A DNA stretch of 63,756 nucleotides, counting the filler, from Parasitella parasitica NRRL 2501 (lineage: Eukaryota > Fungi > Mucoromycota): NCBI GenBank assembly GCA_025201805.1. It is 15 parts of 15 records of this genome, joined end to end, with 100 filler letters (N's around TTAATTAATTAA, not from the genome) between each part and the next. Parts side by side here need not be neighbours in the genome. Positions count along the whole stretch, not along the records: positions 7,638 to 10,044 come from MU619562.1; 14 more parts are not named here. One strand, 5' to 3'. Positions 5,145 through 10,044 of this stretch are shown here, in pieces (the first letter of the stretch is position 1; the number at the start of each line of letters is the position of its first letter). The position numbers were made by a program, and so were the translations under genes. A model generated the notes under the pieces. That model worked only from the letters and a program-made list of their open reading frames with translations, was not told the origin of the DNA and searched no databases.

Positions 5145-6039
5145 GTTTTTTAGTATTCTTGAAGCCGAGTAATATTATATGCATAGTAACCACAAGAACT
5201 TACAAATAGTGCCCTCTTGTCATTCAAAAGAAGACTTTCTTTGCTTCTTAGAGGTGCATTTCTGTCCGCAAAATACATGCCAGTTGCATTATTTCCATCA
5301 GTGCGGTGTTCTCCTTTTGCTATACAGAAGCGGCAGCCATATGTGCTAGGTGCAAGATAGATTAATGATGTTGCGTTGCGTGCTGGAACCTTGAATATAC
5401 TTACGACATATGTCTTTGAAAGTTCAGCATTCTATTTGCCTCGATACCATCACCATTTATAAAAATTATATACACTTTGCACTTCACCGCTGCTTCACCA
5501 TTTGCTTTGACAACAAGAGTTTTTTCGGATAGAAGATTGACTTCATCTATTATGGGCGCCAGAAAAAAATCAAAATCTCCTTTTGCTTTGCTTGGTAGTA
5601 TTGCTATTTGAAATGTGGCATGGCGTGCATATCTATATTTCAATATGGTGGTTACTATCCTTTGTGTTTATGAAGCTTTGTACCATATGCAACTCTACAA
5701 TACCTCTCAGCACTATCCAGATTTAGCAAAACACCATGAATCATGACCAAAGAATTGTGGGAATGTGTGCATGTGAAGCCATCAATATCGATCTTGAGAT
5801 ACAAGTTCAACACATCGGCATCATTATTGAGAATTTTGGACTCGTACAACGATTTGAAAATTTTGCCGTCGTAAATATCACCGTATTCATCGTTGCTCAT
5901 GGTCATCTGTGCTTGGCGCTCAATCAAGTTTTCTCGGATNNNNNNNNNNNNNNNNNNNNNNNNNNNNNNNNNNNNNNNNNNNNTTAATTAATTAANNNNN
6001 NNNNNNNNNNNNNNNNNNNNNNNNNNNNNNNNNNNNNNN

Positions 6040-6470
6040 TGCTTATTTTACAGCTTATTTGAAGAATGACTTTTGTTGACATTCTCTCACTTGTATTGTA
6101 GTTGAGATTTCGATATGTTGGTATTGAAATTGATACTATGATTTTGGGCAGGATTGTAATATTTGAGGATCCTGATTATTTCTAATGCGACTGAGTTTTC
6201 CTTATTGTGTAATAAACAAGCCATTTCTGGCATCTAGAATTATTGCAATTGCTGAAACAATTGCATTGTTTATAATACATGTTTGGAATTTGTTTATTTG
6301 TGATTATGAGCAGCGTTGTTCAACATTAGCATGTGCCAGGGTTGTAGGAGATTGTACTTTGATCAGGAGTGCAAGCCTCTACCAACACTTGTTAATGTTT
6401 ACTTGTGCTTTTCATGTATTTCTTTCTTGGATGGATCAGCCATGATCCATCTGGATTTTATTTTAATGTA
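6040..6470. repeat. Dispersed repeat; inverted copy at ~11770-12185, partial copy at ~34810-34940
   Basis: Near-identical reverse-complement match, e.g. gcttattttacagcttatttgaagaatgac versus gtcattcttcaaataagctgtaaaataagc. Confidence 0.85.
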
Positions 6471-6519
6471 ATTTTGGCACCATACGATAGGTGCCATTTC
6501 ACTGCACAAGCAATGGCAT

Positions 6520-6880
6520 AAAGTGGGAAGATTATGTGCAGTATTTTTTAGTTTTGTTTATTATTTTTTTAAAAAATCGCGATTAATTTGGCTAAGTCAA
6601 CACCAAAATTCTAAAAACAAAAAAACAGGGTTTCCCCCTGTTTTGATGTTAGCGGGGCTTGAAATTCGACCAAAAATAGAAATTGGTAGATTTTCAATGA
6701 ATACCCCACCCTAAATAGCTGGAAAATGCCTTACCACACTTCACAGCTTCGGATAAAATGGCCCATCTCAAGAACTGCTAGGGTAAGCACAGCCGATGAG
6801 TAGAAACAGCCTACATGCTCCTGTATGACCCGGATAAAGACCTAATGTCAAATTTCAATGATAGGCCATCCACTTGACAT
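6520..6880. repeat. Dispersed repeat, probable DNA transposon terminal segment; inverted copy at ~46660-47050
   Basis: Shared aaaacagggtttccccctgtttt palindrome and ~300 bp of reverse-complement similarity. Confidence 0.8.
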
Positions 6881-7637: not shown

Positions 7638-7752
7638 AAAATCACTGGTATACCAAATTACAGCCAATCAGGGATTTGTATGTGGACCAACCTGGACCAA
7701 CCTGGACCAACCTGACCAACCTGGGCCAACCTTTTCTTAAAATCACTGGGTA
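7638..7752 (+). repeat. Left repeat array: ~100-bp unit with nested (GGACCAACCT)n decamers and a CCAAT box
   Basis: aaaatcactggtataccaaattacagccaatcagggatttgtatgt, then ~5 decamers, then ttttcttaa and the start of a second unit. Confidence 0.93.
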
Positions 7753-7795
7753 TGGCTTTTAAAATTTATTTTCTCTTGAATTCTTATAAATTGTC

Positions 7796-8017
7796 ATGGA
7801 TGCAAACATCTGTAAAGGCAAAATAACAAGGGACATGGCCCTCTGCATTTTTTTTTGCCAGGAATATAGCGAAGACAATGCAAAAATTTTGTCTAAAAAA
7901 CTTGAAGCCATGAAAGTTTTAGAGATTTGCTATACAAATGACCCGAATTTACCAATGTTGATGTCGCTAATAAGGATACAAACCAACTCATCAGAATATC
8001 ACAAGTACTCATCGTGA
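7796..8017 (+). CDS. 73-aa protein, stand-alone paralog of the N-terminal domain of the 9855-8549 gene
   Basis: Ungapped alignment with the N-terminus of the facing gene gives 28/62 identities (ITR..A.CIFF..E...N...L...L.....LEICYT.DPN.PML...S.YH.Y). Confidence 0.8.
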   Translation: MDANICKGKITRDMALCIFFCQEYSEDNAKILSKKLEAMKVLEICYTNDPNLPMLMSLIRIQTNSSEYHKYSS

Positions 8018-8548
8018 CAAATGGCACGAATATACATTACCCCTTTAACAATCTTGTTTTTGAAAACAAACTCCAGTCAATGAATCAAAAATGGGCATAA
8101 ACCCATACAACTTCAATTTTTGTAATTGAAATAAAATCTAACAATAATAAATAAGTATTACTATTATATTACGTCTGTCATGAAGCTCATCAAGTTTTTT
8201 TTTGATTTTGAAGACTATGTTAATTAATAGCGAGTCAGTAACTAGAACTTACGGTCGTCTGCATTGAGCGAAACAGCACTTTGAGATGGCTATTCTGCGA
8301 ATTGTAATAAAGTAAACGCTATCATGTCAAGATTTTTAACTGAGATAGCAAAAATAACTATTTTAAACTTTTTATGTCTACATAATTAATGTCAATCGAC
8401 AGATCAGAAAGTGTGAATATAGCACATTTTCCATGAAATCGTTAATTATTTTGTAAAATTTGATTGTATTCTCTGCTATCTTTAATTTTTTTTTATGAAT
8501 ATGATCTTTATATGAGTAACTAATAATTAAAACACGTAGAGTGACAAG

Positions 8549-9855
8549 TCATGGCATCAGAGATCGTCGTACTGGAGCAGAGCGACAATCGAAAAGCTGA
8601 AGTACAGTCTCATCTGAAAGAATCTGCTCCCTGGTTAAGTAATAAGCTTCGTTGTGAGATTCGATATTGTCGATCACTATGTTTTTTACAGTCTTATGAT
8701 CACTATAACAATTGCATTAGAGGACATGATAATTTAAGCATATTGCTGCATTACCGAAGAAATTGGACCAAGTCAGGTTTGTTTGTTGTTAAACCAGCGA
8801 AGTCGATTGCCACAATTGTAACTGGATAATAAGCAGCTGCTAAAAATTGCAGAAAATCTAAAGCAAATTGTTTTAATTTAAGAGGAATCTTCGTAACACT
8901 TCAATGTATTACCTTGAGTGTTTCCTTTAGTCCTTGGGATGACGGTGGTTTTAGTGGTATCACGTTTTACAAAGATTTCATCTGAAGCAGAGCTGTATGA
9001 ACCAAACACCATGTCCACGGAAGAAGCTTTCATCAACTTGTCCACCATACTTTCCAAAAGACGGAGTCTTGTCGTGATTGATTCCTTTCCAGGCAATTTC
9101 CTTACATAACCGATAATTTTACATCCATTGCTTATGAGTTCGTGTAATCTGGCTTGATGTGTTGCTCTAACATTTAGTATTTGTCTAGCTATTGATTCTA
9201 TAGTAAAAAAGAAAAAAACATGAAAATCAAAGGTATGAAAGTATCAGTTTTATTAACTAGTATAATATACCTCGATGTATGCTTTTTAAAACCCATAGGG
9301 AGCGGTATCTTATCTTAGTCTTGGAGGCATCGTTTTTTTGAAATTTGCGGGTTTGGTCAGCAAGCATTAGATCTAACTTGGCTGCGCCGCACCATGTAGA
9401 AAATGATCTTGATGTTTTCTCGTCAAATAGATCGGTAATTACAACAGTTTCTGAGTAAATCTGTTTCATTGATATTTGCTTTTGTTCGTACATGTCACTA
9501 TCCACCGGTTGACCAGATCGATATACTTTGTTCAGGTATTGGATAAGTTGTCTCTGGTTAGCTAGTAAAGTCGTTAAATTAATACATAACAAAACACTCT
9601 TCTTTATCACTTACTTATAATAATTTGTTCTTGAAGATTGGTTGATTTTGGGAGGTCATCTTTGTATCGATGGTAGTAGGATGGAAAGCCATTCACTTTT
9701 AGCTTAGTTTGGAGCATGGGCTTATTGGGATCATCGGTATAGCAAATCTCCAACCCACAAAGTTTTCCGAGGTCTTCTTTGAGTTTTTCAGAGTTTTCAT
9801 TTGTAAATTCTTCGTTAAAAAAAATACATATAGCATGATTTCGTGTTATTGACAT
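8549..9855 (-). CDS. 5-exon, 357-aa protein: conserved N-terminal domain, central region and C-terminal serine-recombinase (resolvase)-like domain
   Basis: Exons 9855-9615, 9561-9271, 9197-8913, 8857-8755 and 8702-8549. All four introns are GT-AG, 52-73 nt, and the frame stays open throughout (1074 nt). The C-terminal half reads KIIGYVRKLPGKES...RLRLLESMVDKL...VDMVFGSYSS...KRD...GNTQDFLQFL...VTIVAIDFAGLTTNKPDLVQFL...VKNIVID. The gene model is well supported; the fold call is pattern-based. Confidence 0.75.
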
Positions 9856-9856
9856 T

Positions 9857-10044
9857 TAAGAAAAAGGTTGGCCCAGGTTGGTCCAGGTTGGTCCAGGTTG
9901 GTCTTAAGTTGGTCCACATACAAATCCCTGATTGGCTATAATTTGGCATCCAGTGATTTTAAGAAAAAGGTTGGTCCAGGTTGGTCCAGGTTGGTCCACA
10001 TACAAATCCCTGATTGGCTGTAATTTGGTATACCAGTGATTTTA
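9857..10044 (-). repeat. Right repeat array: two units (~104 and ~84 bp), inverted relative to 7638-7752
   Basis: (aggttggtcc)n-acatacaaatccctgattggct-taatttgg...ccagtgatttt occurs twice, with 5 and 3 decamers. Confidence 0.93.

Follow-up and report, generated by a model that had tools for sequence, protein, structure and literature searches.

The window analysed here is a stretch of 63,756 nucleotides (nt) from the fungus Parasitella parasitica NRRL 2501, and the locus in question is a 2407-base, AT-rich contig at positions 7638–10044 of it (GC content 0.23–0.43). The contig carries a five-exon gene on the minus strand (the main gene), a short open reading frame (ORF) that runs toward it on the plus strand, and at its two ends a perfect 76-nt inverted repeat (7638–7713 versus 9968–10043). 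The main gene encodes a protein with a small N-terminal domain, a winged helix, a helical linker and a C-terminal recombinase-like domain. With somewhat better than even confidence, we read the locus as an undescribed, Mucorales-restricted mobile element of serine-recombinase-like type, of which the copy in the window is expressed and has no nucleophile.

The main gene spans 9855–8549 and comprises 1074 nt in 357 codons with no internal stop. All four introns are of the GT–AG type, and their phases, worked out by hand, are consistent. Exon A (9615–9855) begins with the ATG at 9855–9853, is followed by a GT donor at 9614–9613 and aligns to residues 1–65 of family members. It is followed by exons B (9271–9561), C (8913–9197), D (8755–8857) and E (8549–8702), the last of which ends in the stop codon at 8551–8549. 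A single 1114-nt RNA contig from run X13, derived from the source's organism, covers 9866–9615, 9561–9271, 9197–8913, 8857–8755 and 8702–8551 and contains the joints 9615/9561, 9271/9197, 8913/8857 and 8755/8702. Three of the same joints, including both of those flanking exon C, are used in oligo-dT RNA-seq of a relative (X19), and the introns are retained in the DNA run X1. The main gene is transcribed and correctly spliced. An initial annotation, made from the sequence alone, had proposed a resolvase-like domain spread over the stretches 9197–8913, 8857–8755 and 8702–8549. These are real exons, every proposed junction is used in the X13 RNA and the peptide strings it quoted are correct by exon translation, but the gene has two further exons upstream.

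The relative's RNA (X19) has a differing first joint, 9564/9637, at which 72 nt are skipped. Read on the plus strand, the skipped segment starts with GT and ends with AG, not a canonical arrangement for a minus-strand gene, and the same contig aligns with 11 gaps. Rather than alternative splicing, the skip probably reflects the divergence of this copy, through a deletion or an effect of alignment.

For the protein, the exons were searched separately and folds were made on natural database homologues. AlphaFold2 was run on P0041, a Hesseltinella homologue of 353 residues, with 150 family sequences, and gave a model with a predicted local distance difference test score (pLDDT) of 93.6 and a predicted template modelling score (pTM) of 0.76. 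The first 60 residues, encoded by exon A, form a small alpha/beta unit for which no match was found. Residues 81–172 of P0041, which correspond to exon B, fold as a winged helix whose closest resemblance is to the DNA-binding domain of RFX (Z 5.9, 71 of 76 residues aligned). This match is modest, but every listed neighbour is a winged helix, and exon B is assigned a putative DNA-binding domain. Exon C supplies the linker helices, strand 1 with the sequence G-Y-V-R-K-L, helix A, strand 2 and a K-R-D loop. Helix B, strand 3 and the motif I-D-F-A-G-L-T-T-N are encoded by exon D, and strand 4, short C-terminal helices and an F-D-C-R-x5-R-S tail by exon E.

The DSSP elements of the P0041 model (E202–208, H214–232, E236–240, H268–277, E281–286, H295–304 and E308–315) match the order of strands and helices that had been proposed from the sequence. 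The best PDB matches returned by Foldseek were Sin, TP901-1 integrase and the gamma-delta and Tn3 resolvases, the top matches all being serine recombinases. Alignment of the Foldseek matches with VIA-align gave Z 7.6–11.0 for 23 recombinase entries and at most 6.2 for everything else. In an exhaustive structural alignment against 48,161 PDB chains, 13 serine-recombinase catalytic domains came first (Z 7.2–10.2), with the next fold at 6.0. Moreover, an independent ESMFold model of P0041 from the ESM Atlas has clusters of the Pfam Resolvase family, PF00239, as its nearest neighbours. The resolvase-like identity of the domain, as first proposed, is supported by these models, for which serine recombinases are the best of all the chains compared. 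From them we infer that the C-terminal domain is homologous to the serine-recombinase catalytic domain, rather than convergent on it.

The structural alignments also locate the expected nucleophile. They start with P0041 residue 201/202 on residue 1 of gamma-delta resolvase and Sin and on residue 3 of TP901-1, and with P0041 residue 203 on residue 2 of Gin. Assuming a gap-free strand 1, the known nucleophiles S10 (gamma-delta), S9 (Sin), S12 (TP901-1) and S9 (Gin) fall on S210 of P0041. A hidden Markov model (HMM) of the family, searched against PDB sequences, matched gamma-delta and Tn3 resolvase at E 0.075–0.27 over 97 residues, with the family's GYaRkS on GYARVS. The second half of this HMMER alignment is shifted by one strand–helix unit relative to the structural order and was disregarded. 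The same search had as its top match an AI-designed TIM barrel, which was set aside because the match is a repeat artefact made up of four stretches of 28 residues.

In the window protein the place of this serine is taken by Leu, encoded by TTG at 9096–9094 on the minus strand, and the codon is kept in X1 and X13. As the initial annotation had it, this is one change away from TCG: the DNA of organism C (X7, three contigs) and the RNA of X19 read TCG, with G at position 9095. At least two sequence variants of the gene were found in organism C, all with Ser; in the source, the interior has the DNA depth of one contig. The comparison with homologues that had been proposed for the GY.RKS motif gave a positive answer. 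All eight proteins first found with exon C (Gilbertella, Backusella and Rhizopus, 82–93% identity) read GYVRKSPGK against GYVRKLPGK in the window, and in the 150-sequence alignment the column holds S101 L7 P4 T3 of 123 (Ser, 82%). The remaining variants (F, M and others) are also single-base changes from TCN, mostly in fragments. Because Leu is found as well in Mucor saturninus (P0009) and M. circinelloides (P0016), the Ser-to-Leu substitution is a derived change common to a Mucor lineage and not a private lesion; other subfamilies too show Leu at this place. With TCG changed to TTG, it is predicted that the window copy cannot form the covalent intermediate and is catalytically dead.

The rest of the motif is present. 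The Arg that precedes the Ser by two residues (R8 of gamma-delta resolvase) is found in G-Y-V-R-K-L of the window and in 117 of 123 sequences, and the motif Ser, Arg, Lys and Tyr are 82–95% conserved across sequences that are only 30–45% identical. Apart from the serine, all other conserved positions are intact in the window: it keeps G, Y, R and K of the motif, R-D after strand 2, G-x-T-Q-D, D-x-A-G-L-T-T-N, I-D of strand 4, T-R-E-Q and F-D-C-R-x5-R-S. In the C-terminal tail the conserved columns are F340, C342, R343, R349 and S350. The segment I-D-F-A-G-L-T-T-N stands in place of L-D-R-L-G-R. The earlier remark that DRLxR is replaced by AGLTT was borne out, and it extends beyond the window, both arginines being absent family-wide.

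A second search added M. saturninus, which is also the closest available genome, M. circinelloides, Zychaea, Benjaminiella and Phycomyces to the genera above, and a profile search of 1.84 billion representatives returned 416 clusters at E ≤ 1e-3. Full-length members have 340–390 residues with the recombinase-like domain at the C-terminus. All 20 representatives that were looked up for their source are Mucorales 'hypothetical proteins', and none is bacterial. UniRef names one member, P0129 from Helicostylum pulchrum, a 'Resolvase/invertase-type recombinase catalytic domain-containing protein', evidently by an automatic profile rule. No paper was found that links serine recombinases with Mucorales, nor any on the family. 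Because intron positions are common to members of different subfamilies that are only about 35–40% identical, the family is of long standing in these fungi rather than newly imported from bacteria.

This bears on the suggestion of a prokaryotic resolvase gene, IS607-like or other, that the fungus acquired by recent transfer, and on that of bacterial contamination. Amoebae, Ascomycetes, Basidiomycetes and Stramenopiles are known to contain IS607-like sequences (PMC3673617), and the domain order recalls IS607 TnpA. Against such an origin stand the four spliceosomal introns, removed in RNA and shared in position with distant members, the GC content of 0.23–0.43 and the setting of family copies in large fungal contigs amid eukaryotic genes. 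None of the 20 source-checked representatives is bacterial, PF00239 is not matched, no TnpB/Fanzor gene is present and inverted repeats are. Transfer or contamination is already contradicted by these data and has next to no probability.

Several features of the copies point indirectly to mobility. Related DNA was found in Gilbertella (L001, 5225–7027), Rhizopus microsporus (L002, 5152–7636) and M. saturninus (L003, 281–1984) at 86–94% identity to the window, introns and untranslated parts included. Exons are conserved no better than introns across these copies, synonymous divergence (dS) is 0.07–0.24 and the ratio of nonsynonymous to synonymous divergence (dN/dS) is 0.26–0.43. A dS of 0.07–0.24 and 86–94% identity are far too similar for vertical descent between these genera, and such values suggest recent horizontal spread among genera of Mucorales. 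The Gilbertella copy has a frameshift and a deletion, that of R. microsporus two stops and a 245-bp insertion, and that of M. saturninus a 193-bp insertion. The neighbouring genes of family copies vary between species. P0045, a member 35–40% identical, is present twice in Hesseltinella at 98% identity and lies between inverted repeats of 405–622 nt that end about 30 nt before the start codon. The two Hesseltinella copies share a 5-kb stretch, larger than the element and amid other repeats, from which element boundaries and a target duplication could not be resolved. Taken together, these features lead us to infer that the family is probably mobile.

The repeats of the window fit this picture. 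The right repeat region (9856–10044) lies upstream of the main gene and holds an 82-nt unit present 1.9 times. Each unit holds a CCAAT-like box and GGTTGGTCC(A) decamers, and the outer 76 nt of the arm (9968–10043) are perfectly complementary to 7638–7713. The left region (7638–7749) repeats the right one in inverted orientation and has five TGGACCAACC decamers, at 7683–7732. The inverted repeat grows to about 113 nt if one 18-nt indel is allowed, and the decamer GGACCAACCT occurs in three to five copies per arm. Decamer-bearing places in the window are 7683–7732, 9865–9916 and 9968–9998, and the CCAAT-box-like GCCAATCAG is found in each 82-nt unit (9990–10031 and 9908–9949) and, inverted, at 7650–7691. 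Gilbertella and R. microsporus likewise have the repeat unit, CCAAT-like motif included, conserved ahead of the gene, so that the repeats may also serve as the promoters of the two convergent genes.

An X13 RNA contig runs past 10044 into a further repeat unit, and the repeat parts have 1.5–6 times the DNA depth of the interior (130–500 at the left repeat, 85 inside). The contig therefore ends inside repeat arrays, and the true outer ends of the element lie outside the piece; perhaps extra solo copies of the repeat do so as well. Loose ends at 9905 and 10007 in X1 and X13 show contigs going on into further units or other sequence. The exact length of the perfect 76-nt match may reflect a k = 77 assembly (76 = k − 1). 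A hAT-like terminus, CAGGGATTTG, at about 10011 was considered as the element end and rejected, similarity in other genomes starting elsewhere.

Short tandem repeats specific to the subfamily are also found near gene starts elsewhere, immediately ahead of the main gene, of the mini-gene or of both genes. The 10-nt GGACCAACCT of the window has as its counterparts a 12-nt AACTCGGGCTTC in the Hesseltinella element L005 (5828–5969 and 7962–8230) and, in L007, an array of a 21-nt unit with the palindrome TGAACCGGTTCA in more than 36 copies (5825–6600). The window decamer is absent from the distant elements examined, which carry other repeats. Tandem repeats of this kind resemble arrays of binding sites in co-evolution with the winged helix that the element encodes.

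The convergent mini-gene, on the plus strand at 7796–8017, is an ORF of 73 residues, or of 60 if counted from the second Met (7835). Its product is paralogous to the N-terminal domain alone, with 45% identity to exon A, and no further ORF in the piece has support. A 295-nt RNA contig on 7809–8101 has a depth of 5016 against 142 for the main transcript, about 35-fold higher. As a structured RNA, 7809–8101 gave no Rfam or tRNA match and a folding z of +0.75. Mini-ORFs also lie opposite the main gene in R. microsporus (L002, 7380–7547) and in Hesseltinella (L005, 7699–7905; L007, 5613–5804), and the window mini-ORF is 46% identical to that of the distant L005. None was found near three other family members, and an ESM Atlas search with the mini-ORF gave nothing usable. 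Its product could be a regulator or an inhibitor. Between the convergent genes lies an AT-rich spacer (8102–8548, GC 0.23–0.33) that holds the 3' untranslated regions, is 82–96% identical in L001–L003 and had no match in Rfam and tRNA searches.

A number of results weigh against reading the locus as a serine-recombinase-like mobile element. The comparison with PF00239 that the initial annotation had looked to came out negative: no exon searched singly and none of 15 homologues reached this profile at E ≤ 10, nor did any of 47 domain sequences at E ≤ 1. An hhalign comparison with Gin alone covered 20 columns at a probability of 7%, and one with 120 invertases, a set too uniform for a good profile, reached 37% and was confident only at the motif. 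The structure was predicted for P0041, which is about 36–38% identical to the window protein in this domain, and the equivalent of the E-helix is short, with helices only at 327–332 and 334–338 before the chain ends at 353. The family columns for R68 and R71 of gamma-delta resolvase, equated by strand order and alignment ranges and not by residue-level superposition, hold Y66/F63/H6 and L118/F13/I7, never R. Because both D-R-x-x-R arginines, which are regarded as essential to serine-recombinase chemistry, are absent family-wide, the catalytic chemistry of the family is uncertain. The Leu-bearing copy has stayed intact and expressed, with dN/dS of 0.43 against M. saturninus, so the serine could be dispensable for the protein's role. 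Known serine-recombinase transposons are without terminal inverted repeats (PMC3627910). In addition, the data showed neither a target-site or crossover sequence nor an empty site or an excision product, and the contig ends inside repeats.

The first of these points recall the possibility of convergence, in which an unrelated three-layer alpha/beta domain with a Y-x-R-x-S-like string would merely superpose on the resolvase fold. Sequence searches are sub-threshold, including a phmmer search of P0005 against PDB sequences that gave no match. Z values of 7–11 are rated 'middling' by the alignment tool, and Rossmann-like folds are common. Nevertheless, serine recombinases take all 13 of the top places, well separated from the next fold, and an alignment that begins at residues 1–3 of the enzymes sets their nucleophile on the one conserved Ser. 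The only PDB sequence matches other than the artefact are gamma-delta and Tn3 resolvase, over 97 residues; one member is already labelled by the automatic resolvase rule of UniRef; and a DNA-binding domain is attached, as in true recombinases. Convergence is considered very improbable.

A non-enzymatic role has to be taken more seriously, though we regard it as unlikely. The family would then descend from a serine recombinase and be an expanded set of sequence-specific DNA-binding regulators or silencers acting on tandem repeats, Y-x-R-K-S would be structural or phosphate-binding, and the Leu copy would be fully functional. Such a role would suit the loss of both D-R-x-x-R arginines in every member, the short E-helix equivalent, the recurrence of Leu in M. 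saturninus and M. circinelloides, a dN/dS of 0.26–0.43 and a Leu copy that is intact, spliced and expressed. It accounts less well for the 82–95% conservation of the motif Ser, Arg, Lys and Tyr among sequences 30–45% identical, and for the many pseudogene copies with introns as conserved as exons, a pattern like that of neutrally decaying repeats. The inverted repeats, duplicated copies and near-identity across genera suit a mobile element better than a host regulator. The initial annotation had left the choice between a recently inactivated copy and a divergent or non-catalytic derivative. Each half stands in part: the Leu is derived, though shared with two Mucor species, and divergence is a property of the whole family, in which R68 and R71 are missing.

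In the mobile-element reading favoured here, the contig would come from inside a genetic element of Mucorales fungi that is bounded by repeats. The winged helix would bind the short tandem repeats within the inverted repeats, and the motif serine would attack the DNA and thereby move or rearrange the element. If the family is catalytic, it must use other conserved basic residues in place of the D-R-x-x-R arginines; candidate substitutes are the Lys beside the Ser, the R-D after strand 2 and the C-terminal C-R-x5-R-S tail. The Leu copy of the window probably still binds DNA. A broader proposal, to which we give rather less than even weight, is that Mucorales harbour an old, diversified and undescribed superfamily of DNA elements moved by a serine-recombinase-derived enzyme. 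This enzyme would have lost D-R-x-x-R and rebuilt its active site, and its elements would carry binding-site arrays in their inverted repeats and a mini-gene regulator and would have spread between genera.

Among transposons, the other major eukaryotic classes are DDE, tyrosine-recombinase, rolling-circle and self-synthesising elements. Fungal DDE transposons with terminal inverted repeats likewise have a gene, with a coding sequence of about 1 kb, enclosed by inverted repeats that are accompanied by subterminal short repeats, and share with the family decayed copies and a distribution that suggests horizontal spread. Terminal inverted repeats bounding the coding region, a feature of structural class, are present in the window and around P0045. 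Unlike in those transposons, no DDE or RNase H-like domain was found in the family, and the catalytic domain has the serine-recombinase fold. The only serine-recombinase elements found described for eukaryotic genomes are IS607-like and without inverted repeats (PMC3673617, PMC3627910). The present family is large, intron-bearing and confined to one fungal lineage, and combines the resolvase fold and nucleophile motif with inverted repeats, yet it is unseen by Pfam. If active, it would be a new eukaryotic transposon type, adding a serine-recombinase class beyond sporadic IS607 imports, as well as a natural experiment in how a serine recombinase works without two canonical arginines, and it might be a source of compact recombinases already at work in eukaryotic cells. 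Tests of function would find ready-made controls in the Ser/Leu polymorphism that occurs naturally among close relatives and in the highly expressed mini-gene.

Compared with the small serine recombinases and the catalytic domains of large serine integrases (gamma-delta/Tn3, Sin, Gin and TP901-1; PF00239), the family has the same fold (Z 9–11, root-mean-square deviation 2.5–3.1 Å, 96–116 residues). It shares with them the Y-x-R-x-S that ends strand 1, an Arg that follows strand 2 and, from the D-R-L-G-R turn, Asp and Gly. Its domain is C-terminal whereas theirs is N-terminal; it has a 26-residue loop after strand 2, a Lys before the Ser and a short E-helix equivalent, and the D-R-x-x-R arginines are replaced by Phe/Tyr and Leu. 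It is also eukaryotic, intron-bearing, restricted to Mucorales and below every sequence threshold.

In IS607 TnpA (6dgc, 6dgb, 3lhf, 3lhk and 3ilx), as in the family, a DNA-binding domain precedes the catalytic domain, and the structures superpose at Z 7.5–9.8. IS607 elements are likewise small with one main gene, IS607-like elements are also known from giant viruses, and there is a precedent in eukaryotes (PMC3673617, PMC3627910). They are without terminal inverted repeats and often carry TnpB/Fanzor2, and their TnpA is recognised by sequence similarity as an IS607-type serine recombinase (PMC3673617, PMC3627910). In contrast, the window and its family have long inverted repeats with tandem short repeats, no TnpB, no PF00239 match, conserved spliceosomal introns and a winged helix that is RFX-like, not MerR-like. 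By sequence the family falls outside PF00239, and by repeats, partner gene and type of DNA-binding domain it falls outside IS607. Of the known systems it is most closely related to the small serine recombinases of bacteria and, in domain order and lifestyle, to the IS607-type transposases.

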